From Eutreptiella sp. 'Long Island Sound 2002' (lineage: Eukaryota > Protista > Euglenida): DNA of 64,000 nt. Location of the stretch: contig OZ038378.1 in NCBI GenBank assembly GCA_964036045.1, positions 131,626,001 through 131,690,000 of the forward strand, in the 5' to 3' direction. The notes under the pieces are model-generated. The model did not search any database and was not told the DNA's origin. It saw only the letters and a program-made list of their open reading frames with translations. Below are positions 1 to 59,800 of the stretch, piece by piece (positions within the stretch are counted from its first letter, which is position 1; each line of letters opens with the position of its first letter). Made by a program: the position numbers and the translations under genes.

Positions 1-717
1 GACTACAAACCTGTAGCACTTGAGCCCAAATTTGGCCCAGGGCAACCATATCCTTGTCCCCCATGACGGCCATGACGATGACCCATAGGAAGGCGGGTGT
101 GCGCGCCTTTAGCCCATGGTTCAATAGCCGCACCGATAGCTGCGACCAACTGCCATTGGCGCAAGGATACCCGTCACCCCGCACCACAAAGGTGAGGGGG
201 CGGGTCCAGTCAATAGACTGGCACAATGCCGGCCGGGATTGCACGTATTGTGCCCACGACCGCAGGGGCCAGCAGCGACCCGACGATGGGAGGTGGGCAC
301 ATTCCACCGGGGGGGACAACGCAGGCGGAGCGGTCAATGACTTCCACGTTGCGCCAAATGGGTCCCGTGTGGGGATGGGCCGTGGGAAGGGGAGTCCTGT
401 GCGGGCGATGTACGCGTCGCCCTGGCGGGTGATGTACTCAAACAACGGGGTGCACCCAACTCCAAAAGGAGCCCTATCACATAGGGTGCGGGAAAGAGGG
501 CCTCCGCATACGTACGGATGGCCTGCACCTTGGTTTTGTGGACCGCCGGGAGGGGAGCGTGGTCCATTGCATCCGTAAAACGGGCCCGGATCAGGGGGGA
601 CGATGACATCCGTTGGGCCAACAGGTCGGAACACTTGCTGTCCCGAAGACTGGTGGCACCACGGAGCCGACCAAGCAGCATGTTGAGATCCATGAAGACG
701 GAGGGAGGGTAAGACAT
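1..717 (-). pseudogene. 5' part of RAG1/Transib-like DDE transposase (family copy C), frameshifted and cut by the window edge
   Basis: Minus-strand translation gives MSYPP...LRGATSLRD...SSSP...AIRTYAEALFP...LLLELGAPRC, homologous to the N-terminus of copies A and B. It then reads PALCQSIDWTRPLTFVVRGDGYPCANGSWSQLSV...PAFLWVIVMAVMGDKDM, matching copy B PPLCRMIDWSFPPTFIVRGDGYPCAGGEWTQLSV...PAYVWVIGLAICGDKAM. The first catalytic Asp codon is at 173-175. Confidence 0.75.
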
Positions 718-30290: not shown

Positions 30291-30911
30291 TGAAGGTGGC
30301 AATGGGGGTGCCTGCTTGCATTCTATTGAGTTGAAGCTTGTGTGTGACTTTCATTTAGCAACTCCCCTATTAGGAGCTCAGCCCATGTAGGAGGATGAAC
30401 CATCCTTGCCACGCGTTTGAACATAAAGGTTATTCGTGTGAGAACATTCCAAGTGGGAATAATTTTGGTCCGAATCATTTCTTACCAGAACAACACCGGA
30501 ACAAGTTGCCGGGACCTGATAACCAGGTCCGGTGCCATAAGGTCCACTGTTTGCAAGCGATGACATTGGACTCGTTTTTGCCTGTTGACTTTGTGTAGGA
30601 CCTACATTTGTCATTAGGGGCTTGCTAGCATATTGTGTGGCATTGGTCCCACTCTAGTCTAGTCGTGCACGTTTCCAAGTTTTGTCGTCCGTCTTGAACA
30701 AAACTGTTATTTCTTGTTTAGCACAATGACTTTATGGCTTTTCAAAGGTGGGGCATGACCTTTTCCGTTATTTTTGTGCCTTGCTGCCGTGTCAACTGCT
30801 CCTTTTTAATGTTGTCCCCTCTTAAAAATGCTACGTAGGACCAAAGATACCTTTCATAGTGGTTGTGAATTTTGAACTTTGGTCATTCGTGGTCACTTTT
30901 CTTCCATTGCC

Positions 30912-33900
30912 ATGCCTGCGAAATAGACCCGGGTTAAGGAAGTAACCACCCACCTTGTCCATTTTGCGGGTGCGGTGAGCCTTCAAGACGGGGATCGTGT
31001 TGGTGAGCTTTTGGTTGAATGGGCCGTCTCCTCACCACACGCTCCGCGCCAATTAGCGGTGGCCGTGCGTTTGGCGCAACTTAGTTGTGTTCTGGAGGTG
31101 CAGCAGGAGGCAATCGCAAACTGCGCCTTCGAGGTCCTTCACCAAGCTGAGTGTTGCGAAATCATCTTAAACCTATGTGTGCCCAAACGAGCATGATGTA
31201 CCCTTTCCGAGGTGTGTACCCGCCGTGGGTTGAAGTACACGGCCCCCGACCCCACCATCTACACCCTTCGGTGGTTCTTGCAACGACTCCTTTGGAACCA
31301 GTTCCACAGCCAGGCCCAGAGCCGCTAATGGTGGCGCCGGGAGGATGGAGATGCATCACGTGGGACCGTAGTGACATGGGTGATAGGGCCTTGGGTGGGG
31401 TACTCAGCACCCCTCCCCAATGATTGTTACCCCAATCACGCAAAGGGGGGGAAATTTCTTACCGCCGACGGGCAGGCGGCGGGCGCCTGCCAATGGCAGC
31501 TCATTTTTGAGCGCTGGGGTGACCATCGTATGGGGGATGTGAAGCGCACGCCCCGGAAGGACACTGTCGTCTTCCGCACTGGGTCAAGATCCCGAAGGAG
31601 GTGATCTAATAGGTCGAGGACGATGACAAGTACCACGGCAACGTCCCCGACCAGACCATGAGGCGCGCACGTGCTCTCCGCATAAAGGAAGTAACCACTC
31701 ACCTTGTCCATTTTGTGGTTGCGGGGAGCCTTCAAGACGGGGATCGTGTTGGGGGGCTTTAAGTTGAATGGGCCGTCTCCTTCCCGCACACTTCGCGCCA
31801 ATTTGCTGTGGCTGCGCGTTTGGCGCAACCTAGTTGTGTTCTGGAGGTGCAACAGGAGGCAATCGCTAAGTACGCCTGTGGGGTCCTTCCCCAGGTTGAG
31901 TGTTATCATCTTAAACCTATGTGTGCCCAAACGAGCATGATGTACCCTTTTGGGAGGTGTGTACCCTCCGTGGGTTCAAGTACACAGCCCCCCACCCCAC
32001 CATCTACACCCTTCGGTGGTTCTTGCAACGATTCTTTTGGAACCAGTTTCATAGCAAGCCCCACAGCCACTACTGGTCGCGACGGGAGCATGGGGATGCA
32101 TCAGGTGGGACCGCACTGACATAGGTGATAGGGCCTTGGTTGCGGCACTTAGCACGCCTCCCCAATGATTGGTACCCCAATCACGCAAATGGGGGGAAAT
32201 TTCTTACCCCCGAAGGGCAAGCGGGCGGCTGCCAATGGCAGGTCGTTTTTCAGAGCTGGGGTGATCATCGTATGGGGGATGTGAAGCGCACGCCCCGGAA
32301 GGACACTGTCGTCTTCCGAACTGGGTCAAGATCCCGAAGGAGGTGATCTAATGGGTCGAGGACAACGACAAGTACCACGGCCACGTTCCCGGCTAGACCC
32401 TAAGGCGCGCAAGTGCTCTCCGCATGAAGGAAGTAACCACCCACCTTGTCCATTTTGCGGGTGTTGTGTGGCTTCAAGACGGGGATGGCGTTGGGGAGCT
32501 TTTTGTTGAATGGGCCGTCTCCTCCCCACACGCTGCGCGCCAATTAGCCGTGGCCGTGCGTCTGGCGCAACCTAGTTGTGTTCAGGAGATGAAACAGGAG
32601 GCAATCGCTGAGTACGCCTTTCAGGTCCTTCCCTAAGCTGAGTGTTGCGAAATCATCTTAAACCTATGTGTGCCCAAACGAGCATGATGTACCCTTTCCG
32701 AGGTGTGTATGCTCCGTGGGTTGAAGTACACGGCCCCCCACCCCATCATCTACACCCTTCGGTGGTTCTTGCAACGATTCCTTTGGAACCAGTTCCATAG
32801 CAAGGCCCACGCCACTACCGGTGGCGACGGGAAGATGGCGATGCATCAGGTGGGACCGTAGTGACATGGGTGATAGGGCCTTGGGCTGGGCACTCAGCAC
32901 CCCTCCCCAATGATTGGTACCCCAATCACGCAAAGGGGGGGAAATTTCTCACCCCCGACGGGCAGGCGGCGGGCGGCAACCAATGGCAGCTCATTTTTGA
33001 GCGCTGGGGTGACCATCGTATGGGGGATGTGAAGCGCACGCCCCGGAAGGACACTGAAGTCTTCCGAACTGGGTCAAGATCCTGAAGGAGGTGATCTTAT
33101 GGGTTGAGGACGATGACAAGTACCACGGCCACGTCCCCGGACAGACCATGAGGCGCCCAAGTGCTCTCTCCATGAAGGAAGTGACCAGCCACCTTGTCCA
33201 TTTTGTAGGTGCGGTGAGCCTTCAAGACGGGGATAGTGTTGAGGAGCTTTTGGTGAAATGGGCCGTCTCCTCCCCACACACGCCACGCCAATGTGCTGTG
33301 GCCGTGCGTTTGGCGCAACCTAGTTGTGTTCTGGAGGTGCAACAGGAGGCAATCGCTAAGTACGCCTCCGAGGTCCTTCCCCAAGTTGAGTGTTGCGAAA
33401 TCATCTTAAACCTATGTGTGCCCAAACGAGCATGATGTACCCTTTTGGGAGGTGTGTACCCTCCGTGGGTTCAAGTACACAGCCCCCCACCCCACCATCT
33501 AAACCCTTTGGTGGTTCTTGCAACGATTCTCTTGGAACTATTTTCATAGCAAGCCGCACAGCCACTACTGGTGGCGCCGGAGGGATGGAGATGCATCACG
33601 TGGGACCGTAGTGACATGGGTGATAGGGCCTTGGGTGGGGTACTCAGCACCCCTCCCCAATGATTGTTACCCCAATCACGCAAAGGGGGGGAAATTTCTT
33701 ACCCCCGACGGGCAGGCGGCGGGCGGCAACCAATGGCAGCTCATTTTTGAGCGATGGGGTGGCCATCGTATGGGGGATGTGAACCGCACGGCCCGGAAGG
33801 TCACTGTCGTCTTCCGAACTGGGTCAAGATCCCGAAGGAGGTGATCTAATGGGTCGAGGACCACGACAAGTACCACGGCGAGGTTCCCGGGCAGACCCCG

Positions 33901-34675
33901 AGGCGCGCAAGTGCTCTCTCCATGAAGGAGGTAACCACCCACCTTGTCCATTTTGCGGGTGTGGTGTGGCTTCAACACAGGGATCGTGTTGGGGACCTTT
34001 TGGTTGAATGGGCCGTCTCCTCCCCACACGCTGCGCGCCAATTTGCTTTGGCCGTACGTTTGGCGCAATCTAGTTGTGTTGTGGATGTGCAGCAGGAGGC
34101 AATCGCTAAGTGCGCCTTCGAGGTCCTTCCCCAAGCTTAGTGTTGCGAAATCATCGTAAACCTATGTGTGCCCAAACGAGCATGATGTTCCATTTCCGAG
34201 GTGTGTACCCTCCGTGGGTTGAAGTGCACGGCCCCCCACCCCACCATCTGCACCTTTCGGTGGTTCTTGCAACGTTTCTTTTGGAAGCGGCTCCACAGCC
34301 AGGCCCTGAGCCGCTAGTGGTGGCGCCCGGAGGATGGGGATGCATCACGTGGGGCTGTAGTGACATTGGTGATAGGGCCTTGGTTGGGGCACTCAGCACC
34401 CCTCTCCAACGTTTGGTACCCCAATCACGCAAGGGGGGGGAAATTTCTTACCCCCGACCGGCAGGCGGCGGGCAGCTGCCAATGGCAGCTCATTTTTGAG
34501 CGCTGGTGTGACCATCGTATGGGGGATGTGAAGCGCACGGCCCGGAAGGACGCCAAAGTCTTCCGAACTCGGTCAAGATCCCGAAGGAGGTGATCTAATG
34601 GGTCGAGGACGACGACAAGTACCACGGCCACGTCCCCGGCAAGACCCTGAGGCGCCCAAGTGCTCTCCGCTTGAA
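30912..34675 (+). repeat. Five tandem ~745-bp units, each fusing the transposase N-terminus to an internal part of the accessory gene
   Basis: aaggaagtaaccac recurs at ~30936, 31685, 32427, 33174 and 33924. The unit reads EVTTHLVHFAGAVSLQDG...AVRLAQPSCV...LNLCVPKRA..TLSEV.TLRGLKYT (like 46930-47430) and then APHPTIYTLRW...APLPNDW...GGKFLT...IFERW.DH..TPRK...RPSALR (like 43435-43920). The ATG is at 30912. Confidence 0.92.
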
Positions 34676-36130
34676 GTGCGAACCGGACACACCGCATGAC
34701 CACCCAAAGCGGTGCCAGACATCCCTACGGCGAGGGAGCAGACACCATACACACGGCTGCGGCAGGCCCTAGCGTCTTTGCAGAAGCACGTGCACACGCA
34801 AGTGCGTGTAACCCCCTTTTCCCCATGCCTGAGGCGCCAATAGGGCCAAAAAGCTGTCGGGCTTTCTCCCCGAGAACCCGTTCCGGCCACGTTTTAGGTT
34901 TTTGTTCCGGCGGTGTTGCGCTTTGTAGCGCTGAAAACCACCAAATCGTCGCCGGAATGTCGACCGATCAAGTTATTGGTACTTCGCCGGAACACATTTT
35001 TCTGTTGTCCTCTTTGTAGGTGGCGGTCATCTAGATCAATCTTGGCGACCCCTGAGAGGTGCGCCTCAGCATGCAGTGGCCAGGCTGCGCCCTCCGGCCC
35101 ATCTACGTTAGCGCGCTCCTGCAGCAGCTGCACCTGCAGCCCATTGCAGCATTGGAGTTGCTGACGGCCCTGGCCGACCATTTGGCCGGCCGTAGTAGCG
35201 TTTTGGACATGCAAGTGAAGGGCTAGGGCAGCATTGACAACCAGTACCTGGCCCCTGCTCACCGCCAGCAACTTGTAGCCACTGTTGCTAGCCCCCCCCC
35301 CCCCCCAACCCCCGACCATGGTCCCAAATCCTGCCCGTGAGATCAAAACCAACCCCGAAATCCCAGCCCAAAACGAACCCCAACCCCCAAAACAAAGCAA
35401 AACCCCGCCCAAAACCCAAAGCCCGTGCGAAACCCATCTGCAAAAAGAGGAAGAGGCTTGCGGGCGAGTGCTCCACGGAGCCCTCCTCAGAGTCCCGATC
35501 GAACTCCTCCTCCTCCTCCTCCTCCTCCTCCTCCTCCTCCTCCCTTATCTCCCACTCGTCCGAGTGTTGTGCGGACTTGCCCGCATGGCAAAACAACACC
35601 CCTCAGCCCCCCAAAGAAAAGACCCCCCCCCCTCGGACCCCTCGAGACGTATCCCCAGCCCAGCCCAAGGACAGCCCCCTCGCCCCACGCCAGCCCCACA
35701 TCCCCACCGGCGGACGTCCCGAGGGATACCCCCCTGCCCAAGCCCAACCCCAAGGCCAAGGCAAGGGGGGTGGGGGGGGGGGTGTAAGTACAAGGCGGGC
35801 GAAAATGTTGATGTCGTTTTTTGCAACAAGGGTGTGTGGGGGATCAAGAACGGCAAGGAGGCCCTTTCCGCGGGTGGACCCCCCCCCCTAAAGGGGAAAC
35901 GTGGGTAAGGTTCCCGGGGGATGAGGAACTTTTTGGGATGTTGAAGGCCGCCGTGTGGCGGACCCGAAGGCAAGCCAAGAAGTTCCTCAAGAAAAAGAGG
36001 AAGGAGAAGGAGGCGGGTGAAGAGAGGGAGGGTGACAAGGATAACGAGGACGCGGACGCCCAGGACAGGACGGGGACGGGGATGGGGATGGGGATGGGGG
36101 AGACAAAGGGCAGGGGTGTGTGGCCGCCAA
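34676..36130 (+). pseudogene. Accessory gene of copy A (multi-exon, unknown function); its 3' end resumes at ~58000-58225
   Basis: RLRQALASLQKHVHTQ | intron 34802(or 34808)-35019 | VAVI.INLGD...WPG..RPI...LLQQLHLQP, then FCNKGVWGIKNGKEALSAGG..ETWVRFPGDEELF..AVWRTRRQAKKFL. All segments are homologous to 41880-43420 on the minus strand. Confidence 0.75.
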
Positions 36131-38110: not shown

Positions 38111-41100
38111 CAAGCCATAATTCCACCATAATTTGCCATGATTCCACCCCAATTCCCCCACAATTCCACCCAAAAAAAAGTCCCCCATAATCCCACCCAA
38201 ATTCCCCATGATTCCCAATGATTCCCCATAATTCCCCCATAGTTCCCCATAATTCCCGATAATTCCTCATACTTCCACCCCGATTCCCCCGTAATTCCCC
38301 CCAAATTCCCGGTAATTCCCCATAATTCCCCATAATTCACCCCTAATCCTCCCCTAATTACCCATAATTCCCCATAATTGCACCCAAATGTCGGCTCGGC
38401 ACACGTGATGCTCCAATTGGATGGGAGGGGGATCATGAGGAAGTTGCGACGCAAGATGGTTGCCACCATAGTCGACAAGTCGGGGTACATTCAAGTAGCG
38501 AAGACCACATCTCCTGAGCACGTGGACATCGCTAGAGTGTCCATGTGGGACGTACGCATGGTAGCCTGCCTGCTGAGCAGCACCGGTGAGTGGCTCCCTT
38601 ATCAAGAGCTCCCGATCCGATACTTGCAAAATCCAAATGTGTTCAACCCACAGGTAGAAGTGCCACCCAGAACCTACCGAGTGCTGGTGCCCAGTGCGAT
38701 TGACAGAAGAACCCAATTCTATCGTTTCGTGAATTCTTCCACGGATGATGCATCTTCGGTGGCCCGCCGTAACTCTGTGTTCCCATGGAAGGGTCCCACG
38801 CGCATAGCCGCCCCTGATGACACAAGTTACTTGTGGGAATACCAAATTGCTCAGGTACTCCATGACAGAATGCAGGCCTTCCTTGAACACCAACACACCC
38901 GGACAGTGGCTTGACCTCACCGATCATGAGAAGTTGTACATCATCCTGCAAGCCAAACCAAATAAAGGAAATGAGGGGATACAAGATATCAAGTCCTCAG
39001 AAGATTTGGCGGTAGAACTGGCAGCGGCGATGGACAAGGACCTGGACGATGAAGTTTCCTTGCCTCGCCCACCCTTCTTGACAGAAGTGTTCCCAACGGG
39101 TGTGCCACACATGCGGTATCGGCGCATTGTGACACTTGCCAACGAGAATCAGGTCTCAAAGGTAGCGCGGGGGCTATGGCAGAACAGCCGACTGGTGTGG
39201 AAGAAGTTAACGACGAATCGTCGTGTCAGATTTGGGGTGTGGGCGGCAGGGGCAGAGGAAGACCATCAACGAGCACCAAGGGAACCGGTTATGGATGGGC
39301 AAGCGCCGATTACCGTTCTTTTTGGATTGTCCGAGGCCACCGTACACAAATATGCAGCGTTGTTCGGTCTCTTCACCACAGTCTCGACTCGAGGTGCATC
39401 CCACATATTGGGGCGCACAAAATACGTGGTCACATATGGCCGAAAAGAGAGAGCTTTCATAAGCCACGATGTCACGCTGGACTCTACGCTGGGCAAGTAA
39501 CGTTCGAGGCAAACTGCACGGAGGATGACCTCCTGGGAGCCAAGCGGGCCTTCCAAGAGCGACAAGGCCAAATGCTTGAAGACGACATGGGAGATTGGTG
39601 GAGAATGGAAATGGGCCGGGAATTGGGTGCGGAGACGGCGGTGGCCGAGGAGGCCAAGCGCCTGACGGCTGATAACCTTGTGGGCTTGTCGGGCTGAATT
39701 GCTGGCACACCACCACAGGACACGCACGACCACGCGCAGGTCACAAAGGTCCCCCCACAAGGGACAACACGAGGCTGTGCGGAGGGGGGATGCCTTGAGA
39801 CGCTGCACGGGGAAAAAACATCAAGGGGTGCGCCACTGCGTGACGCGACAAAGTGGAACAGACCATAGAAATCACTCAGCCAATACATTGCACATGCAAT
39901 CATGACCTCAGGCACAAACCGTGGCACTGGTGGATTCGAATGGTGGTGGCCATACTTGCCTGCCAAGTGGCCTTGTCCGTCGAGACTTCCTTTGACATGC
40001 AGACCCGGAGCACGAATAGAAAGTCGTGCCGTGCCCGCATTCGACGACGGCATGTGCCGCGTTCGTCATTGTTCCTTGACAACATACTATGGTACTGGAG
40101 GGTGCTCATGGGCGCGTGGGAAAAATTCCACTCCGCAGAGCACTCTGTCCAATGCACGCTACAGCACACCGAACGCCCCGCCTACCATGACGACCTACCC
40201 TACCTATGGCAATCGGCCCCGTTGTGGGATAGGGCGCACCGACTGGTGACCCTGTCCAACGACGTGCCCCCAAACCCGAACAGAGCGCGCCGGGGTTGCT
40301 GCCGTGACCCAGTCATATTGTCTCATGCCCGATGGAAACGTGAAACCCTAACACTGTCGGTAGATGTGCATCCAAACCCTAGTCACCCCAAGACAACCAC
40401 GTTGCACGCCCTGACTTTGAACGTTGGCGGCCCACACCTCAGCAGACGGAGGTGGGGTTGCCTCGTGCAAGAAACACATGCCTCCTCCCCCCACATCATT
40501 GCCCTCCAGGAGGTCCGCTTTAGAACAGGCGAGGCCCACCTTGCATACACTGCAAAGGCCTTTCCGAACCATCAGTCGCTCGCCCATGATGACAAGCGCC
40601 CCGACATGATGTTCCTTGTGCATGAGAGGGTCCACAAGTATTGCAAATTAATGGCCCACCGCTCGCCCCATGCAATTGCTCTCCGCGTCCAGATCCAAGG
40701 CGTACCCGAATTCCCTTTCGTGAACCAGCATGGACCGTTCACCTTACGGTAAAGGGAGGCCTTAGACGCCTGGATTGCGTTTGTTCCCAATGTGGGCATC
40801 GTTGGAGGAGACTTCAATGACGGAATTTGGCACGCAAGTCCCCGCCGCAGAAGGATATGGCACGACTGGCTCGACTCCGGACGCCTTTTTGACCCGCAAT
40901 ACCAAACGGTGCCTCAACCGCAGGGCCCGAGCCACACCCGAGGGGGCAAACGACTGGACGCGCTCCTGCTGTCACAAACAACATGGAATGCACTTACGCC
41001 GGTGGCCTACCAAGCGACCACGTTCCCGTTGTCAGGGGGGCACGCAGGTGTTGCAATCCACACCACGGTCGTGCTCCTTGAGCCACAGCCCCCAGATCCC

Positions 41101-41879
41101 GAGGTCATCAGCATCCGCGACTGCACGGGTACAGATCCGAAGCGCTTCCGCGCACATATGTGGATATGGTACCGGGGTTTTCCCCAAAAAATGACCATGG
41201 AGACCGCCAGCAATATGGTGCTGAAAGAGGTCGCGCGATACGTCGCTGCAAACAAGAAGCCAGAAAGACGACCGAACCAGGCTCATAAGGATCTGCAGGC
41301 CCGTCTTGCCAAGAACCCTTGTGACCAAGCCGCACTCAAACTATGGGGTGAACATATGCAATGCAAGTGCCATACCGAGGTGATGAAGAAGCTGCGCCGT
41401 TTCTGCAAATCTGCGATTGTGAGCACAGGGACAATCTTCGCGGAGCTCCCCACGTGGCTCCCGAAGCCTGCTCACGTTTCTTCCATGTCTCCCACTCCGG
41501 CGTCGGCCCTTCGTGCGCGTTTGAAACCCAATGTCGTTCCAGCCAAATTGTTCCAGTGTTCTAGGCTATCTGCCCGGAACAAAAAAAGTTCGAAATTTGT
41601 TTGTCCCCCAACCAAGCCTACCCGTGCATGGTGGCAAAATATGTTGTTTGCTAGCCTTGGGGGTCCCCGCTGGTATGCTTATATTTGTTGCCCGGCGCGT
41701 TGCCACGTGAAAAAAACTTTTTTTCAAAAACAGTTTTTGTTAGAGCACCATTGGAACACCGCTGGAACAAGTTATTTGAACGTTGCCGGAACAAGCAATC
41801 TACAATAAGAGCAAAGCACAATGAAGGGTAAAATGGTAACATACATTGTTGTGCAAGGTGCCCCCGGGGGCCCATCGGA

Positions 41880-44800
41880 TTAGTCTCTTCGTGTGTTCCT
41901 CACCCAAAAGTCCTGCGTGGTCGGGGGCCCGGCGGGCGCCCCCGAACTCTTGTTACCCGCCCCACTATCCCCCCCATCTCCCTCACCGACCACCACCCCT
42001 TCACCCACCACCCCTTCACCCTCCACCCCTTCACCCACCACCCCTTCACTCTCCACCCCTTCTCCCACCACCCCTTCACCCTCCACCCCTTCGACCTCCA
42101 TCGTTTCCCCCTCCACCCCTTCGACCTCTTCCCCGACGCCCCCATCCGGTTAGCCCCGGTAGCACCCAAACCTGCCCATGGTCCATCCCCTTCATGTCCC
42201 CTGTCCCCGTCCCCGCCGTTGCCCTCGTCCCCGGCGTCTTCCGCGTCCGCGTCCGCGTCGTCCTCCTTGTCCTCCTCCTCGGCCGCCATCATCTTGGCGA
42301 GGAACTTCTTCGCCTGCGTCTTGGTTTTCCAAACCGACGCTCTCGCGATGGCGAAGAGTTCGGGGTCTTTGGGGAAGGTGATCCACGTCTCCTCAACCCC
42401 GGGGGGCCACCCGCGGCAAGGGCCTCTTTGCCCTGCTCGATCCCCCACTCCCCATTGTCCCGACAAAAGACATACACTTGCTCCCCCCCTTTGCCTTTGG
42501 CTTGGCCTTTGACTTGGGTTGGGGTTGCGGGGGGGGCGCGGCTCTCTTGGGAGCCTTGCGAGGGGGTTTGGTGGGCTCCTTGGTCGGGGGGCGGGGCTGG
42601 GGCTCCTCGAACACCGAGGAGTCGGTGGTGGACCCCGAGGAGGAGTCCGTTGAGGAGTCGCTGGACGACTCCTCGCTGGAGGACTCCCGCGGGAGCCTCT
42701 TCCTTTTTTGGGTGGGTAGTTTGGGGGTGCTCTTGGGTTGCCCCTTGGGGGGGCGTTGGGGTTTGGGTTCGGGTTTGGGTGCTATTTGGGGGGCTGGGCG
42801 GTGGTTCGGGGGTTGGGGTTGCACGGGCGGTGCACACACGGGCGGGGCGGGGCCTCTGCGGCCACTTGTTGGCAGTGCGGCAGCGCTGGGGACAGGTCGC
42901 CAATGTTCCCCCACCCCTCGATGCGCGTCGCGAGAACGCTGCCGCGGGCTGCCAGGTGGTCCATCATGGCCGTGAGGAACTCGAGCACGGCGACGGGCTG
43001 CAAGTCGAACTGCTGAAGCAAGGTTCCCAAACAGATGGGCCGTGGATCGCTTCCTGGCCAACGACGGATCACCCGAATGGCGCGCAGGTCCCACGGGTTG
43101 ATCTGGATGTCCTCCACCTACATGGGGGATAGCCAAGATGAGTGTTCCAGCGACGTTCCACTAAGTTGTTCTTGCGACGTTCAAAAGATTTTTCAAACGC
43201 TTTTTTAGTGACAGATTGGAACGTCGTCAGAACAAGCTGTTTGGAACGTCGCCGGAACAATGCCCCGGCACGCCAACCATGTGCATTTTTGGGCCCTATT
43301 GGCCATGTGGACATGCTTGCGGGGGGGCATACCCGCACGCGCGTGTCCACGTTCTCCTTGATCGCCGCCAACGCTTGCCGCAATTGCGAGATCGGCCTGC
43401 GCTCACGCTCCGCTAGCACTGCCCGAACGGCAGATTATTGGTGCCGCTGCGCGTCGTCCTCACACTTGAGGCGTAGGGCACCAGGCCGCGACAGCGTTTG
43501 GCCAACGACGAAGCCATGGCCTTTGCCTTCGCCCTCGACCACATAGACCCCGTCGCGGAGGATTCGGGTCCAATTGGCCCAAAGGATGACGGTTTCCTTG
43601 CGGGGCGTCGCCCTCACCTCGCCAAGGCCGTGGTCGGCCCAACGCTCAAAAATGTGGTGCCAATTGCAACTCCCCGCACTGACAGAGCCCGCGGTTAGAA
43701 ATTTGCCCCCCTGCGCCTTGCTGGGGAGCCAGTCGTTGGGGAGGGGTGCTGTGCGCCCTGTCCCCGGCCCGGTCACCCAGGACACCGGGATCCCCCCTGG
43801 CGTGGACCCGTCCTCCCGGCGCGAGCAGCAATCACGCTGCTCCTTGCAGTGCAGCTGCTTGTGCAGGAAGCGCTGCAGTAGCCAACGGAGCGTGTAAATG
43901 GTGGGGTGGGGGGCTCGTAGGACACAGGTGTCCAAGGGGGGGGGGTTGGGGCCTACTATCTCCCTTGTCCAGGGAAAATTGGCGGCTTTTGCTGCCAAGG
44001 ATGAGCCAAGTCGGTTGCGCATCCAATCCGTAATGCGCAAGACGCCGCCGGCGTCATCCCCCTCCCCCTCCCCCTCCCCTCCCCCCCCCCCCCCTCTTCT
44101 TCCTCTCTCTTAACCCCCGGGTTAGCCCTCCGCTCTTCATCCTTCTCATGCACCACCACGTCACCCAGCTCCACAATCTCATCGTCGTGGAGCCCCCCCC
44201 CCTAGCTGCAACCTGCCACCCCCCACCCATGCCCTGCAACTCCTTTTCATGCACCTCCACCGCTTTCTGCGCCTCCCTTACCCGCCGGTTCCCCTCTAAA
44301 ACCCTCTCGCTCGCGTTCCCCCCCCCGGTTAGGTCCCCACGCCCCCGACACTCCGCCAATTTCCCTGCCCATTTTTTCACCCGGCGGTGGAGGCTTTCAA
44401 CATTGCCCCTCGTCTCTTGCAGCTCCCCCAAAACCACGGCTTGCTCCCGAACCCCCCCCCCCTTACTCATTGAGCTCCCAGCCGAGGGCTCGGGCAAATG
44501 GGGGCAATGCGCTTGGAGAGGCGCGACTGGCGCCGCCCCTTGTGGGGCACGCCGTGGCGGCTCCAGTGGCCTCTGAGCGGGGGTTGCCCACGGAGGACGC
44601 TTGGGAGCGCCCTGAGGTGGGGGAGGCGCTGGGGAACCCAGCGCAAAGCTGCTGCGTGGCTCGGGGCGCGTGGCCCCCTGTGGCCCCAGCGGGGCTGGCG
44701 GGGGTGGCGCAGCCAGTGTTGCCCCCAGGGCCTCGGTCTCGGTCATCCCGTCCTGCACACAAGGATGCGCGAGAGAGGCCAACCCTACCCACACGCCTTG

Positions 44801-45130
44801 TTCCTGCGACGTTCCAGCAACCTGTTCCGGCGACGTTCTGGCAACTTTCCGGTGGCCGCTGGAACCTCGCCAAAACGTCGCCAGAACAGGTTGTTGGAAC
44901 GTCGCCGGAACAGTGGAAAATAGACACAGTTCCACGCGCGCACAAGGCGCACTGCGTGCACTACGGCCCCGTGGGGGGGGGGGGGGGCATGTACTACAAA
45001 TGGCACTGGGGGGTTCTCAGGTTTTCCCCTTCCCATCCACAACAAAGGATCGTAGCCCCTTTATGGGCATGGGGCAAGCACAATAACCGGGGGGTTCTCG
45101 GGTTGTCCCCTTCCCATCCACATTCATCGA
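41880..45130 (-). pseudogene. Accessory multi-exon gene of copy B (unknown function; acidic and Pro/Lys-rich low-complexity segments)
   Basis: Segments are homologous to the copy A gene: APHPTIYTLRW...RPGALRLKCE (43435-43920), SQLRQALAAIKENVDTR | intron 43118-43338(or 43332) | VEDIQINPWD..WPG..LLQQFDLQP, and WITFPKDPELF..VWKTKTQAKKFL. It ends ..RD* at 41880, as copy A does at 58225. The 5' limit is uncertain. Confidence 0.7.
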
Positions 45131-45499
45131 ATTCCTAGGGGGGCAAACAGGGAATGGGACACAGGGGGGAGCGGGGGGAGCAGGGCAACACACAAGACAC
45201 ACAAACCCAACGCACTGATTTCCACTGCGCGCAAAGCGCGCCAAAGCATACACCCAAACCCAAACCCGAACCTAGGCCCAAACCAAAACCCGCACCCAAA
45301 CCCACACCCAACCCCCAGCCCAAACCCAAGCCCAAACCCACACCCGAGCCCAAGCCCAAACCCAAGCCAAAACCCCCACCCAAACCCAAACCCGCACCGG
45401 AACCCCAACCCGCACCCAAGCCCGAACCCATTTGCAAACCTGAATATTCTTGGTGCCCTTCAGAAGCGCCAACATCATTTGCATCATATCTGCGCTGAC

Positions 45500-47433
45500 G
45501 GGCGCGGCTTTGGATAGTAGCAGAAGAAAGAAGAGAGCTGAGGAACGGGGGTGGTGCAGAGGGGGTGGTCTCTAGTGCAGCCCTGGGAGCACAAGGCACA
45601 TGTCGAACAGCGTCATGTTGGTGGAGATGAATGTGAAAGTACAAGAAAACCCATTGCAACACTTGCCGCAGGGCGTCGGCGTCCGAGTCAATGGATCGAG
45701 CTACCGCAGCTGGCGGTCCATGTAGCCGTTTGCCGGCCACCGCCCCGGGCACTGTGTTCGTTGAAAGCCTGCTTCAGGAAGCGGTTAAGGCTTTCGACAA
45801 TGTCATTGGAGAACATTGCCAATCCGAACGTCCACATGTCGTCCAATACCCGATCCGCATCCTCCTCCAGGAACAGGAGGTAATGGGACGCGGACCTAGG
45901 AGCACAATGCTGCCGGAAGGCAGCTGCCGCTGCCCGGCTTTGGGGACGCGTACCCACCTAATAGGTGTGGCACAGGTCCTTCAAAGCTTCGCCATCCCCA
46001 TCACAGCCCTATAGAGGGGCTCCTCCGGCCCAACCAACAGCAACAATGCAACATCGGGCTAGGCCGCAAACAGGCGTGACGTCTCCTCACCATCCGGGGA
46101 ACAATCCTTGGCTAGGGGCCACCCAATGCGATGCTCATGCAGTACCACCTGAATCGCCGCACGGGACACCTCATCGCCCCCGGCCAGCCGTTGTGCCGCC
46201 AACCGCTCAATGTTGGTCATTTGCAACCGGCCCATCACCATGCAACAGTGCAGAATGCACATGACAACGCGGCACCGGGCAATGACCACCACCGGTTCCA
46301 CGGAAAAACCTGCGGCCTTCAGCGATGGTGTTCCCATCAAGAAGGACGTCCGCTGTGCGTGGTCCGACTCGGTGGTGCGGACCACGTCTTTGCCCCGCCG
46401 CACAGCGGTGTCGGAGTCCCAAATCCCCTCGTTGTATAGTGACCCCACTTGTGGGGCCGGTGTGATCCCGATGATGCGGCGCACCCACAGGGAATCACAA
46501 CCGAGCCAGGCATCGGCCGCTTCCTGATGGGAATTGAAGACCACCCGGTGGGTGCCCACGACCTCCTGGATGGCCTAAGAAAAAAACATCAATTTTGTTG
46601 GAACCAGATTGTTCCGGTGGCGCTTCCAACGAAACACTTGAACATCGCCGGAACAAGTTATCGGAACGTTGCCGGAACAACACGGTGTGTACGCGGCACA
46701 CCTTAATATTCTCTTCCCCAAGGGTTGCTAGGGTCGCCATCGCTTTGTCCCCGCAGATTGCGAGGCCGATGACCCACACGTAGGCGGGAATTCGTCCCCA
46801 AAGGCCCATGTTGGGGATGGACACAGACAATTGGGTCCACTCCCCGCCTGCGCAAGGGTAGCCATCCCCCCTAACAATGAAAGTCGGGGGGAACGACCAA
46901 TCGATCATGCGGCACAACGGGGGTTGGCTAGCAATGTAGCGCAGCCATGATGCCCACAGCCAACTGATGCCCGTGGCCTTGGGTTCCGAAGTGCTCACCC
47001 GGGGGGGGGGGGGGGGGCAGCTCCAAGGGGGCCAATAGATCTTGCCAGCATTGCTGGAAAGCCCTCTCAGGGCAAATCGGACGGGCGAATGGAAGGCCCG
47101 TGGTCGCGGTGTACTCCAGCCCCCGGAGGGTGTACACTTCCGAGAGCGTGCGCCAAGCGGTTTTGGGCGCACGCAGGTTGAGGATGAGCTCGCAACACTC
47201 ATCCGGGGGGAGGACCTCAGAGGCGTCCTTGGCGATTGCCCCCTGCTGTATCTCACGGACACAGCTTGGTTGGGCCAAGCGCACGGCCACCGCAAATTGG
47301 CGGCGGGCGTGTGGAGAGGAGATGGCCCATTCCGCTATAAGCTCCCCAACAGAATCCCCTGGAGGCTAACAGCACTAGCCAAATGGACGAGGTGGGTGCT
47401 TAGTTGCCCAACGCGTGTCTGCGATCTAGGCAT
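45500..47433 (-). pseudogene. DDE transposase with a RAG1/Transib-like catalytic core; one intron; several frameshifts and stops
   Basis: ATG at 47433. Motifs: FIVRGDG (D 46864-46866), WLGCDSLWVRRIIG (D 46494-46496), KAAGFSVEP..MCILHCCM.MGR, PDGEETSRL, SHYL..GLAMFSNDIVESLNRFLK..SAR (E 45793-45795), QVLQWVFLYF. The order and spacing parallel the RAG1 core as I recall it. The 3' end is approximate. Confidence 0.72.
46575..46701 (-). other. GT-AG spliceosomal intron (127 bp, phase 0) with an internal GTTCCGG/CCGGAAC inverted repeat
   Basis: AAT ATT AAG|gtgtgc...ttttttcttag|GCC ATC CAG joins ENIK to AIQEVVGTHRVV in frame. Confidence 0.85.
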
Positions 47434-48840
47434 GATGAAGCTACAACAATGAACTACGCAGCAGAATTGGCAATACGTACCACAAGGAGAAGATGCCTGC
47501 GAACCCACCGAGCATTCGAGCAAGGAACAAATACCAAAATGGGACCCTTGGCATTGCAACAATGCACAAACCAAACGGGAAAACGGGTACACCACCGGTG
47601 AAAAGTCATACAACGTTGCGTCTGAACTACAAGGAACAGCAGGCTTGCAAATGGATACGAAAAGTTCGAAATGTGTACACCTAGTGGAAGGTGGCACCAA
47701 CGGCCCACAATATGTCAACATGGCCCCGATGGGAAAGACAACCCTTGGACGCGTTACACATGCAAGAAAGAGACAAAAAACATCATTTACAAACTTGGAA
47801 ACTCATGGTGATGGATCTGGGTATCTGGCCTGCGACACTTGTTCCAGTGGTGTTCCCAAAGAAATTGTTCCGGCGGGAATTGTTCCAATTGGGAACATTC
47901 TAGTCGGCAACAACATTGGGGTTCAAACGCTTACCAAGGGGGCAACCAAAAAGCTGCCCGATTTTGCGGGAGATCCGCAATGGGATCCAGAGAAGGCCTT
48001 CAGTATGTTGCCAAATCTCGGCGTGCCAGGAACTCCCAGGGGTTAGACCCTACCAGCGTGGCGCGACTTCCAGGACACGGCCAATCAGCCCAAGAAAAAG
48101 TCGATGGGAACGGACGGGGTCCCGTCGCACACAGTACAATGGCTACCGGAGATCTTGCAATGGATCCTATATAGAAAAATTTATGAGTTATGGAACCTAG
48201 GACAGATGCCGACGTAATGGACCGACACCCGAATATCGATGTTGTACAAGAAGGGCGACCCGAGGGATGAAAGCAACTACCGTCCTATAGCGATATCCAC
48301 ATGCATGTACCAGATTCCCGCGAAAATGATCCTGAGGGGCATCAACAAACCTCTCACCGAAGTACTATTTGAGCACCAAGCTGGAGGACGACGGGGGCAT
48401 ACCACACTGCCCCGGGCTATAAAAGTGTGGTCGTCAGCGCTGAGCATGCTAGAGCACCGGACGTGGTGCTCCTTTGTCTACAGAAGCGCCATTTTGGGGC
48501 TTCCACTCACCATACCTGCTAGTACGTTATCCCCGTAAGCTAGGAGAACGCGTAGAACGAGGATAACACTCCTGAACGCTCCGGAACGGGGAGAACGCGG
48601 AGAACGCGGAGAACGCTTCCAGAACCACAAGCGGAAGCACTAAACCGGAACGCACAGAACGCCGAAAAAGCCTAAAACGCAGCACACCTATGTTGGGGGG
48701 GCCGCGTCCTCACAGTTGGGTATCCAGCCTACGCGGTTGGTCCCCCCCCAGGTTTCGCACTGGTCTGCATGGGTAGGGATGGCAGAGGCTTGGCGGCCAT
48801 GACCTTCTCGATCCCACCACGGCCGCCTCCGCCACCCCGT

Positions 48841-50400
48841 CTACTGCACGCTGAAAGAGAGGTTCTCCAACGTGTCGTCCTCTACGCTCCCTCTAGCGTC
48901 CTCCGCTTCCTCCTCTTCTTCCTCCTCATCGCTAACCGGCTCCTCCCCGTCCTCGCCGTCCGCTTCCGGGTCGTCCTCCCTGACGTCCCCCTCATGAGTC
49001 TCCTGGTTAAGGGGCGCTCCCCTTTCCTCGGCGTCCTCCGTGCCCGTTGTAGTGATCCCGTGCGCGGGTGCAAAGCATTGCACATGCAACGGGGTGTCCG
49101 CGCATCCGCTACACACGTATTGTGTGCGGCCCTTGCCGCAATGTGCACAAGTGCGCCGTTGGGCCCCGGCAACGGGGACGTGGATGTTGCGTCGCGGCTG
49201 CGCATTGGCACAGTACCGGCGGCAAAGAAGGGCCCACTGCCACTCCCACATGCTATTCCTGCCACGGCACCTTTCTAGGGCGCTGCAAGTTGCAAACGCG
49301 TTGGCCGCGGCGTATCGCAACAAGAAGCCTCGCACGGCTTGCGACCAGGTAATCTGCCTTCCTAAGAGGCACATGTGCAACGCCATCTGGTTGGCAGAAT
49401 GCACCCCCCGTGCCACTTGGCGGTACACAGCAACGAGGGGGTGGATTTCCCGGCCCGTGTGGTGCAGGGGGGGCCGCGCAACGTACCACACGTTGGACAA
49501 GATCGGCACCAATTGGGGAGGCCTACCTCCGGTTTTCGGCTGCTTGTACACCTGCAGGGCGTACTTGTGGCCGTCAACCGTGGCCACAGCCGTCTGCCCG
49601 GCCTGGATGGTGTCTCCGGCTTCCTGGACACCGGCCGTGTCCTTTCGCACCATGATGATGAAGGGGCGGCCCTCACGCGCAAGCCGTTGTGTGGTGGCAT
49701 GTGACCCGAAGAACAAGTTCCCTACAAGGACCGTGTAAGCCGGCAGCTGTTTGGACTACATGGCCATCAGCTGTCGAGCGTTGAGGTTGCCCGCACCACA
49801 ACCGTGTCGGCGAAGGACACCGAGGCGGCCAGTGTACAGGTACACGTCCACAATGTACGCCGTACCGGCATCGGCCAAGCAATAAAGTTTGATGCCGGTG
49901 TTGTGTGGTTTCCGCACAATGTACATCTTGAGGGGGCCTGCCCTAAGGCCCGTATGCGGCACTAGGGTTTCATCCCCCGTGGCCGCGCCACCCATGGTCC
50001 ATGCTGCAGCGCAATGGGCACTAACCGCCTCAATAAGGTCCACCACATCCGGGCGACAACGTTTGTGTAGATCGTAGTATTGCCCCCGGGATAGCAACCG
50101 TGCTAGATAGGCATTGTACACCAATCCATCACGGTCCCAGACACCATCCACCTGCATGGGCCGCACCACGCCCAGCAATAGCACGAAGGTGTTGTACCGT
50201 GGTACTAAGGGGATGAGGTCCTCCCTTTCCCGAGCTCGGAGGACGGCCTCTTGGGCATCCACAATGGGCTTCATCATGTAGTCCCATATACCATCCGTGT
50301 CTAGCTCACCGAGTTTGGCCTCCCCGGGTCGTAAACCGTACTCAATTGAAGTGGCACAGTGCTCCTTGCGGAGGCGACTAGCCGAGAGATTAAGAGGCAT
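48841..50400 (-). pseudogene. piggyBac (DDD) transposase with a C-terminal Cys-rich domain, inactivated
   Basis: GDETLVP..GPLKMYIVRKPHNTGIKLYCLAD..YIVDVYLYTG. There is an in-frame stop at 49756-49758, and the 2nd and 3rd catalytic motifs are degenerate (VGNLFFGS; RGVHSANQ). The C-terminal region reads CAHC...CSGC..LHVQCF..H, followed by an acidic tail. Confidence 0.9.
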
Positions 50401-56800: not shown

Positions 56801-59800
56801 CATGGCGACCAATAGTCTGATGCAGAAGGGTCAATCACTGATTAGAGGAACCGTGAGGGGAATCCTGGCGCGACGATAGGTTACTGTCAGGGTGGCAGTG
56901 ACATGGGCCTCACACGTGGACGCCTGCGCTAGGGTGCTCGCCGTGTTCGCTCAGCGCAGGCAGTTTTGGATCCACCATAGTGTTCACGTGACTCTCTATG
57001 TGGCACACCACGCGTCAACGTGTCCTGTTGGGCACACTTTCCAGCCTGCGTTGCCTCACCACAAGGGTCCTACGGCATATAGAAATGCTGAAACTGGCGC
57101 TGCGCTCTGCGCTCGCCCACTCGGCCACAGTTGCCCGGGCCAACATTAGCCACCAGCAGCTGGCCTACCAGAAGTTCCGCACATGGGCTGCTATGGTGCC
57201 CCATAAGCTGGGCGACAGAGACATCTGGTTGATCGCAGCCATGTGCGATACCTTGCAACTTGCCCGCGTAAGCCAGCATAGATCCATGAAACAATGGCGG
57301 CAGGAGTCACTGGAAGATGTGCGGGCTTGCATGAGCCGGTGGCTGATGGAGTACCAAGCTTGGGTGGAGGAAATCGCAGAGCGGTGGAGCCTTGTCAGGG
57401 AACATAAAAAGAGGACTGCGAGTGCAGTCGCCTTATCACCGGGTCGGCGTTTCAAGCGATACAGGACACACAACCCCGACACCCCGGATTACATCCAGCT
57501 TACTGGGGACCCTGAGCTGACAGACCCATGGGAGATTCAGCTGACTGGATCTCCCAGGACCCACCGCACGTGACCCTTGGCTCGCCACCACCACACTAGA
57601 AAAAACATCACTTGAAACTTCTGATTGGGCAGCCAATGCCCGTGGCAGAGCAAATCTGCACACCACTGTCAGCCAGCCGACTTGTGGGATAACTTGTCCC
57701 CTCGGGCGTCCTCGATGGACGTGCATAACCCGCACGAAGCCTGTGGCTATAGTTGCAACGGCTGTACTAATGCTTGGCAACTTGCCTATGAGTGCTCCTT
57801 CTTTGTTCATCGTGAGACTTTGAACTTCGAACTTATGTGGCGCCGGAAGTATAAAAGCAAAATTCCCCATAATTGCCCCATAGCTCCCCATAATTCCCCC
57901 ATCATTCCCCATAACTCCCCCATAATTCCCCACAATTCCCCCGAATTCCCCATAATCCTCATAATTCTAGTTATCTGGCGAGAAGCCGTCGTTTGGCGCT
58001 AGCGGGCGCACACCCCTGAATGGGGATGGGCTAGGGGCAAGTGAGGGTGCACCGGTGGCTAACCGGGATGAGGGTATGGGGCTGGGGGTTGCCGGGGCGG
58101 AGGTTGAAGCGGTGGTTGTTGACCGGGTGGTGGTCGGCGAGGGAGAAGAGGAGGTAAGTTCCGGGGTGCCCTGCCGCCCGCCAACCACATAGGAGCCGTA
58201 GCCAAGCGAACTACAAAGAGACTAACCCCATGTGCCCTTGCCGTCACCCTAGCTGACAATGTATGTTTGACTTACCGTTTATGTACACTTTGCTTTTTGT
58301 GTTGCTTGCGTGTTCTAGTGGTGTTCGGGTAACTTGTTCCGTCGGTGTTCCGGTGGTGTTCGGTAAAAACTGTTTTTGGACGCAACTGTTCTTCACACGA
58401 CTACACGGAAAACGACAAATTTGAAATTTCCAGCGGGGTGCCCCTACGCTAGCAAACAACATATTTTCCTAGCATGCATGGGTGTGGTTGGTTGGGGCGG
58501 AAACAAACTTCAGACTTTTTTTGTTGCCGCCACTTTTGTTTGAACCATTTGGCCGGAACAATCGTTGCGTTCAAATGCGGACCCAGGGGCAGGGTAGAGA
58601 AAGTGCGTCGGGTGATATGCTCTTCCATGTGAGTTCTCAGTCCGTGTCGGGTGGGCCGACCGTGTAGTCCACACGTCGGTGCTACTTCGTGACCATGGGT
58701 CTGTGTCACTGAATGAGGAAGAGTCGAGTATAGATAGATGTGAGTTCAACTAGGAAAAGAAGGTACACACAGTAAGATAGATTGCCCGAGTTCCTAATAC
58801 TAACGACCACATAGGCAACATACTGCCTTAGTGCCCCCCACCCTCCCGTCCTCTCCCACCTAAGCCCGCAGGTTTGGCCAAAGGAGTGCCAACCATAGAG
58901 CAAGGGCCCGTAGATTGAGTTGAAGGTGCCCACTATGGTAGTATTTAAGCCACACGTTGTGGACAACGAAACACGGCTAACCTACGAACACTAAGGCAAT
59001 GATTGTCCATTTAATTGAGTTGTACCGCCCAAAATTGCTGCTCATGCATACTAGGACGTGCATTTGTGGAGCGCTCTTTGACATGTGTGTGGCCAAGTGC
59101 TGTGATGTCCACGCATTAATGACCACTAGTGTCACAAAACCTACACATCTCACCAACCTCTTTTTCATTTGTTCACACAACAGAGCAGAACATGGGGTAG
59201 TTGACGTGTTCCCCACTCCTCTATGCTGCTCTAGCAAACTAGTGTCCTGTAAAGTACAAGCCACCAAAGTAGCACCCTTCTACACCTGCAGGCAGTGCAA
59301 TGTAGGAGGCTCATCTGCCTTTGGGCAACAATCCACAGCCCTAGGTAATTTTCTGTAGCTGGTTCCATGGGGAACATCACATTGTGCCAAAGGGATTTAA
59401 GACAACCTTCATTTGGTGCCTAATCTCCCTCAAAGGAAATAGAGGGGGGACCGGCTTTTTGCCCGCTTGGGGTGTTTGGTACATGGACCCTCTCACCAAT
59501 CCTATTCTTACACCGGAATTGTGGTGGAATGGATGCCGATACCAAGTATTATACCCATGTATTTAATTCATTGATGCAAGGCTATACATGGGTTTGCACG
59601 TGCTGATGTACTATCAAGCTTGGCTAAGCGTCACCCAAGGTTAATGGGGGGTTGCCCTCAACAAGTAGCCCCTCCGCCAACCCATGGCCCTCAAAACCTA
59701 GGTTCCAGGTCTCCATCGTTCGGTAAGGGGCCAATCATGGGGGTGATCCCGGTCATGACCTGACCCCAAAGGGGGGGCTACCCCCCCCACCCCTCTACAG

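Follow-up and report, generated by a model that had tools for sequence, protein, structure and literature searches.

A decayed two-gene DNA transposon with a predicted RAG1-like transposase fold in the euglenid Eutreptiella

We analysed a stretch of 64,000 nucleotides from the euglenid Eutreptiella sp. 'Long Island Sound 2002' (contig OZ038378.1, positions 131,626,001 to 131,690,000, referred to here as the window), in which an element of 6434 bp, spanning 41507-47940, interrupts a long interspersed nuclear element (LINE). The element appears to be the decayed copy of a DNA transposon that was autonomous, had two genes and moved by cut and paste, and its transposase family an unnamed and very divergent branch of the EnSpm/CACTA-Mirage-Chapaev-Transib (CMCT) assemblage; we put the probability of this reading at roughly 0.85. 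A first-pass annotation had proposed a RAG1/Transib/Chapaev-clade transposase of an undescribed lineage at this locus, citing a series of peptide motifs, all of which are present on the minus strand in the order that it gave. The proposal is supported by a match of the predicted fold to RAG1, by the pairing of a conserved glutamate with the catalytic E962 of RAG1 and by the RAG1 neighbours found with protein language models, although EnSpm/CACTA-type transposases share this fold, which therefore does not single out Transib.

The structural evidence comes from an AlphaFold model of P0153, an intact relative with a 474-aa open reading frame (ORF). An earlier model from a 14-sequence alignment was too poor (predicted local distance difference test score, pLDDT, of 59.9) and was replaced by one from a 142-sequence alignment, which has a pLDDT of 75.7 and exceeds 90 over residues 130-390. 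It has the topology of an RNase H fold, in which D86 stands at the end of strand 1 and D167 after strand 4. A Foldseek search of the PDB returned RAG1, BbRAGL of amphioxus or HzTransib for all of the best 47 matches, with E-values down to 3.6e-10, followed by Hermes with an E-value of 2e-4 and a template modelling (TM) score of 0.24. The VIA-align Z score was 17.2 for RAG1 over 342 residues (chain 531-975), 15.3 for BbRAGL, 13.5 for HzTransib, 9.8 for the P element transposase and 5.7 for Hermes. The same order was obtained in a Foldseek-independent search of 48,161 PDB representatives, where unrelated chains gave Z scores of 6.3 or below, and RAG1 occupied ranks 1-8 in a structure search of Swiss-Prot. 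The model thus matches RAG1, BbRAGL and HzTransib over around 340 residues, far above other solved folds, and a best match to an unrelated DDE superfamily, which the first-pass annotation had named as the result that would contradict it, was not seen.

Several of the VIA-align alignments end with model residue 399 paired with residue 962 of mouse RAG1 or 984 of zebrafish RAG1, the catalytic glutamates in those numberings. Hence the conserved glutamate of the family's D-x-x-E-S-x-N motif is the equivalent of RAG1 E962. The predicted architecture, a pre-RNase H region leading into the RNase H fold, a helical insertion and then the catalytic glutamate, is the one known from Transib, RAG1 and RAGL, and the order of the motifs is the same. 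The spacing from the second aspartate to the glutamate is also similar, being 232 aa here and 254 aa in RAG1.

Searches with protein language models pointed in the same direction. The neighbours of the relative P0134 that bear a family name were RAG1 (score 0.94, 180/256 features), as were nine of the ten best named matches to exon 2 of L007, a full-length paralogue from an ENA assembly (score 0.94). Names of the EnSpm/CACTA, Mirage and Chapaev (CMC) families, including Transposase_21, never occurred among the neighbours of either protein. A shape search of the ESM Atlas gave RAG1 fragments at TM scores of 0.58-0.61 and clusters carrying PF02992 (Transposase_21, the EnSpm/CACTA family) at 0.54-0.65 over 323-405 residues, about equal to RAG1; the AFDB cluster matches included one DUF4218 protein. 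To our knowledge no CMC transposase has a solved structure, and the PDB ranking therefore cannot separate Transib from CMC.

Exhaustive HMMER comparison of exon 2 with 1.84 billion representatives found 180 matching proteins, mostly fragments of decayed copies. Intact ORFs, 443-491 aa long and located on megabase contigs of one ENA assembly, came from a profile search with a word index. The conserved motifs of the family are GDG-x-P-x-GGE-x-W, GGD-x-PW, C-x-LH-x-x-MA-x-GR and PDGE(E/D)T, together with F-x-x-D-x-x-ES-x-NR, RGGG and QW-x-F-x-YF. In P0153 numbering the acidic triad comprises D86, kept in 16/18 members, D167, kept in 84/105, and E399, kept in 22/33, many of the members behind these counts being pseudogenes. 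The two aspartates are around 81 aa apart, and the second lies 231-234 aa from the glutamate in nine diverged members. Nine long members lack conserved C(2)C and H(3-4)H motifs; conserved instead are C232, C250, H253 and C363 of P0153, in the arrangement C...C-x2-H...C. A nonamer-binding-domain signature was not found.

The transposase gene of the window copy is a pseudogene of two exons (Table 1). Exon 1 has frameshifts near 47365 and in the G-run at 47000-47016, and exon 2 has stops at 46061-46059 and around 45980 and a frameshift near 45690. Exon 2 nevertheless contains the codons for the second catalytic aspartate (46496-46494) and the catalytic glutamate (45795-45793), as well as the C-x-L-H, PDGEET, RGGG and QWVFLYF motifs. 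In L007 the gene is open, with exon 1 running from MPRSQ to ...DNIK and followed by a GT..AG intron of around 130 bp and an exon 2 of 423 codons. Splicing of 46575-46701 in the window copy joins ...EENIK to AIQEVV..., and since the joined sequence runs uninterrupted through P0134, P0153 and P0016, relatives that lack introns, one of the introns claimed previously is supported. The supposed second intron, near 45900-45960, corresponds to coding sequence in the intact L007 and was rejected. The ratio of nonsynonymous to synonymous substitution rates (dN/dS) between the window copy and L007 is around 1 (0.6-1.3), a value that is uninformative because it measures post-insertion decay.

The ends of the element had been placed at 41519 and 47928, with terminal inverted repeats (TIRs) of 22 bp. 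These repeats exist (41519-41540 and 47907-47928) and the element is a real interruption of the LINE, but they are only the inner part of a TIR of around 36 bp, and the true ends lie 12 bp further out on either side. Alignment of the window with L007:6033-12506 (88.9% identity over 6588 aligned bases) halts at 47940 and 41506, and eight family termini, from the window and three other loci, align outward as far as a common CC(C)TTGG and no further. Contigs from three public sequencing runs (X1, X2 and X5) were also aligned with the window. Nine of them, from all three runs, break exactly before 41507 and six, from X1 and X5, exactly behind 47940, with mutually unlike flanks beyond, and contig depth rises around 100-fold at 41506. 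The TIR starts with CCCTTGG, and its two ends agree at 34/36 positions in L007.

It had also been claimed that removal of the element restores the frame of the LINE. This holds with the corrected ends: excision of 41507-47942, that is the element with one GG, makes the endonuclease frame continuous with the one that has the reverse transcriptase motifs, whereas excision of 41519-47928 leaves an open frame without these motifs. The LINE itself (window 39853-41506 and 47943-48600) is decayed, with endonuclease and reverse transcriptase frames and stops of its own. One X2 contig passes from the LINE flank directly into the sequence after 47942 with a single GG; X2 thus carries an uninterrupted paralogue or allele of the insertion site. 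No LINE paralogue usable as an empty site was found in the window or in four loci.

All five complete elements are flanked by a 2-bp target site duplication (TSD), namely GG in the window, CG at L007 and TG, TC and TA in the subfamily of L002, L005 and L006, and the third flanking base does not match in any of them. Given the agreement of these five elements with the empty site, and the failure of 3 bp ever to match, we take the TSD to be 2 bp of any sequence. A 5-bp TSD was not found in the five elements or at the empty site. The termini carry CCCTTGG in the window's subfamily and CCCTGCG in the L002 subfamily rather than a CAC(A/T)GTG-like heptamer, and the ends read 5'-CC..GG-3', with 5'-CA..TG-3' not seen. 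The first-pass annotation had called the termini atypical, but had mis-set them by 12 bp. We also considered a CAC terminus for L007, with CACG/CGTG just outside the ends and GGGCG/GGGCA as the duplication. This was rejected because the window copy does not have the bases concerned, the breaks of contigs fall within them and only 2 bp is compatible with the empty site.

A number of results weigh against the assignment to a CMCT branch. By sequence the family could be linked to none that has a name. In Pfam none of the 142 alignment members matched at E-values up to 10, and this silence covers the RAG1_* models as well as Transposase_21, DUF4218 and Transposase_24, the last being the model for accessory proteins of the TnpA type. 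Nine ORFs of the window, eight long homologues and five L007 ORFs likewise had no relevant Pfam match, phmmer and profile searches of the PDB were empty or returned noise, with no RAG1 or Transib chain, and the literature gave no match naming the family. Furthermore, the modelled protein is not that of the window but P0153, which is around 30% identical to the window's subfamily, and the putative equivalence of D86 and D167 to D600 and D708 of RAG1 is drawn from strand topology in the model. RNA splicing was not seen, as the sole metatranscriptome contig crosses the intron unspliced, and there was no clear transcription. Finally, the protein encoded by the second gene has no recognisable domain.

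Within the CMCT assemblage the family could belong to Transib itself, as an extreme member sister to or inside Transib and RAG1 in which the ends have altered and the TSD has shortened to 2 bp from 5. Of the solved structures, RAG1, RAGL and Transib match best by far, and the only named language-model neighbours are RAG1, never Transposase_21. The PDB ranking cannot discriminate here, however, with no solved CMC structure to compete, and among predicted structures Transposase_21 equals RAG1 (TM scores of 0.54-0.65 and 0.58-0.61, respectively); HzTransib, moreover, scores below RAG1. Transib is defined by a 5-bp TSD and a CAC heptamer (PMC9435367), in place of which we find 2 bp and CCCTTGG. 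A 2026 preprint describes Transib relatives with 3-bp and TA duplications, variable TIRs and a TSD length that varies (bioRxiv 10.64898/2026.08.26.747230), and because it argues that both hallmarks are labile in Transib, their absence weakens membership without excluding it. Also missing are C(2)C and H(3-4)H, and the RAG1 Pfam models are silent. As predicted EnSpm/CACTA-type proteins match about as well as RAG1, and there is no 5-bp TSD, CAC terminus or C(2)C/H(3-4)H pair, we do not file the family as Transib proper, and regard such a placement as possible but rather doubtful.

Placement on the CMC side, as a Mirage-like or EnSpm-like family whose likeness to RAG1 comes only from architecture common to the whole assemblage, would account for the long alignments to the PF02992 clusters and for the DUF4218 protein among the AFDB matches. 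The two genes in one orientation and the subterminal and internal motif arrays recall what is generally known of En/Spm, and 2 bp is the TSD of Mirage (PMC12730594). Yet no member matches Transposase_21, DUF4218 or Transposase_24, the termini are neither CACTA nor CA..TG, the zinc motifs common to CMC are missing and the language-model neighbours name no CMC family, so that we consider this placement unlikely. The evidence so far does not allow an assignment to either Transib proper or CMC. An origin in an unrelated DDE superfamily of the hAT, P, MULE or Kolobok type, with an RNase H fold and helical insertion that merely look RAG1-like, seems highly improbable. The S-N-D-x-x-E-S-x-N-R motif does resemble the glutamate motifs of MULE/IS256 and hAT, and the P element transposase reaches a Z score of 9.6-9.8, but RAG1 reaches 15-17 over around 340 residues including the pre-RNase H region, and Hermes is far behind on both Z and TM scores. 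None of the Pfam models of these superfamilies match, and a 2-bp TSD suits none of them (hAT, P and MULE elements duplicate 7-10 bp). A more far-reaching but unlikely alternative is a deep independent branch beside Transib and RAG1, in which the canonical zinc site was never present or was replaced, which integrates with a 2-bp stagger and which, to judge from intact copies and contigs numbering in the thousands, is still active in a protist.

An unnamed CMCT branch, the reading that we prefer, can be set against systems already described. The assemblage as drawn by Kojima in 2025 contains EnSpm/CACTA, Mirage, Chapaev, Transib and Plavaka as well as ESTA and Lanisha, with TSDs of 2-5 bp, termini that are mostly CA..TG and C(2)C and H(3-4)H motifs in common; its ESTA lineage has TA duplications and matches RAG1 by HHpred (PMC12730594). 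The present family falls inside this TSD range, with the 2-bp state of Mirage and ESTA, and has a RAG1-like core, as HHpred detects for ESTA, and a model that resembles Transposase_21 proteins. In contrast to the described members its ends are CC..GG, its TSD can be of any sequence rather than TA, the defining C(2)C/H(3-4)H pair is missing and its host is a protist rather than a fungus, plant or animal. With Transib and RAGL it shares TIR-bounded cut-and-paste movement and internally deleted non-autonomous derivatives. It differs from Transib and RAG1 in showing no similarity to the RAG1 Pfam models, in its 2-bp rather than 5-bp TSD, in its CCCTTGG ends in place of the CAC heptamer, in the C...C-x2-H...C set that replaces the C(2)C/H(3-4)H zinc ligands and in the missing nonamer-binding-domain signature. 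Unlike in RAGL elements, the partner gene is not recognisably RAG2-like.

A further parallel is AanRAGL of Aureococcus anophagefferens, likewise a RAG1-type transposon whose two genes share one orientation, in a single-celled estuarine alga and with evidence of recent mobility (Tao et al. 2022, PMC9435367). AanRAGL has, however, a recognisable RAG1L, a kelch RAG2L, asymmetric CAC-type TIRs and a 5-bp TSD, none of which is found in the element here. The maize CACTA element En/Spm also encodes two products in one orientation, has short direct and inverted motif repeats near its ends and gives rise to abundant deletion derivatives. It differs in that nothing here matches TnpA or TnpD in sequence, in its 3-bp TSD and in its termini, and the analogy for the second gene is by inference only.

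This second gene (gene 2) lies downstream of the transposase in the same orientation, past a 114-bp palindrome between the two. The predicted product has a proline-rich and coiled-coil N-terminus, two globular segments and an S/P/K-rich linker, and ends in a conserved C-terminal segment of around 70 aa and an acidic tail; the interior of the gene contains an intron-like stretch (around 43120-43330). Comparison of the window element (copy 1) with copy 2, an older pair, gave in-frame dN/dS values of 0.28-0.39 for segments of gene 2 and 0.19-0.21 for the N-terminal exon of the transposase, with out-of-frame controls at 0.8-1.7 overall and at 0.8-1.2 for gene 2. Because the in-frame values are far below these controls, gene 2 evolved as protein-coding sequence, which bears out the earlier claim of a second gene. 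More than 50 paralogues at 75-92% identity were found, all in one ENA assembly, and no distant homologue. Identification of gene 2 as RAG2-like or as a dioxygenase is unsupported, there being no match in Pfam, the PDB or the Atlas. Our guess, by analogy with TnpA of En/Spm, is that it encodes an accessory DNA-binding or regulatory protein.

The element also carries arrays of a 17-nt motif, GGAACGTCGCCGGAACA. Allowing up to three mismatches, this occurs 15 times in the window, with 0.11 occurrences expected, and always inside copies of the family. The occurrences are arranged as pairs 24 bp apart, often inverted, and fill the transposase intron, the intergenic palindrome and the intron-like stretch of gene 2. 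Deletion joints of other copies in run X2 lie in or near the arrays (43182, 43205 and 46636), and P0001 is the product of such a deletion. The arrays may be protein-binding sites or introner-like insertions.

These data suggest a model where the transposase would bind the CCCTTGG... ends of around 36 bp and, if it acts as RAG1, Transib and hAT do, excise the element by way of a hairpin formed on the DNA that flanks it. The element would then be inserted by cuts staggered by 2 bp into targets of any sequence. The gene 2 product could possibly bind the 17-nt motif arrays, as TnpA serves En/Spm.

Table 1. Features of the element and of related copies in the window.
Feature	Position	Strand	Evidence or remarks
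TSD, left copy (GG)	41505..41506	.	same dinucleotide at right end; single GG in X2 empty site
TIR at the 3' end of the genes, begins CCCTTCG	41507..41542	+	29/36 match to other end; L007 alignment stop; contig loose ends in X1, X2, X5
Subterminal pair of GGAACGTCGCCGGAACA	41753..41793	.	
Gene 2	42200..44748	-	putative start ATG 44748; ORFs, dN/dS, paralogues; exon structure inferred
Four 17-nt motifs, inverted pairs, inside gene 2	43143..43259	.	
114-bp palindrome of four 17-nt motifs, between genes	44799..44912	.	
Transposase exon 2, pseudogene	45300..46574	-	one open 423-aa ORF in L007:7420-8691; 180 HMMER matches
Intron, GT..AG, two 17-nt motifs at 46639-46679	46575..46701	-	homology to intronless relatives
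Transposase exon 1, pseudogene	46702..47433	-	ATG 47433; first catalytic D in IVRGDG, codon 46866-46864
TIR at the 5' end of the genes	47905..47940	-	L007 alignment stop; contig loose ends in X1, X5
TSD, right copy (GG)	47941..47942	.	LINE frame joining; empty site; end comparison
Further GGAACGTCGCCGGAACA sites	34903-34994, 58335-58351		
Copy 2, diverged non-autonomous deletion derivative	30404..36100	+	whole catalytic core deleted; orientation opposite to main element
Copy 3, first-D exon region, runs off left window edge	5..445	-	47-50% amino-acid identity
Solitary terminal fragment of a further copy	58079..58588	-	

Other, diverged copies are present in the window, as reported previously (Table 1). 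In copy 2 the N-terminal exon of the transposase runs in frame into part of gene 2, with a short microhomology at the junction, and the fusion unit of around 748 bp forms five tandem repeats at 30925-34565, an array to which Tandem Repeats Finder, with its period limit of 500, is blind. The far end of copy 2 was not located; where it would be expected, at 36247-36436, there are 18 tandem copies of a 10-bp unit, GGAATTATGG.

Outside the window, 5131 contigs of run X2 map on the element, and the X2 organism hence carries the family in great abundance. The runs that hold the family come from two organisms and from estuary, sediment and marine metagenomes. A second, younger subfamily is represented by L002:7435-12612, L005:9333-15165 and L006:9322-12075, which share 92-97% identity. 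Its elements are 5.2 kb long, with the TIR CCCTGCGTGCGCGC and an intronless transposase ORF of 474 aa, and have a downstream region that is Q-rich and K/E-rich, unlike gene 2 of the window's subfamily. Judging from these sequences, the younger subfamily is probably active now.

Several neighbouring sequences were also observed. Adjoining the left end of the L002 element is a 369-aa ORF (L002:6387-7496) with H-x-D and distal H/R motifs, a candidate 2-oxoglutarate-Fe(II) oxygenase. At L003:7495-8865 a piggyBac-type ORF (PF13843, DDE_Tnp_1_7) lies directly upstream of what is left of the transposase in another copy, an instance of elements nested in a repeat-rich genome. In the window, a 291-aa ORF on the minus strand (48841-49716) has a tail rich in cysteine (C-x2-C...C-x2-C...H) and then an acidic stretch, and is possibly the C-terminus of another transposase, perhaps piggyBac-like. 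A search of the window against Rfam gave no match.

RAG1 is the textbook example of a domesticated transposase and assembles the antibody genes of vertebrates. The defining hallmarks of its known relatives, Transib and RAGL, are CAC ends, duplications of 5 bp and an insertion that binds zinc. The present element is not a new kind, as RAG1-like transposases that make 2-bp duplications already fall under the CMCT concept. What it adds is the RAG1 architecture in an abundant protist family that, unlike every catalogued relative of RAG1 and Transib, lacks those hallmarks, is missed by all sequence models and includes intact copies. The RAG1 fold hence reaches further than profile searches report, and the family lends support to the view, recently advanced, that lability affects end sequences and duplication length but not the core. 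An intact copy of the L007 type offers a natural system for testing what sets the spacing of the target cuts. Should the family instead be a deep branch beside Transib and RAG1, it would be the third type of transposase with a RAG1 fold, and one open to experiment. The RAG1 architecture would then reach into a supergroup of eukaryotes remote from animals, with consequences for the age of the RAG1 fold and for the evolution of target-cut spacing.

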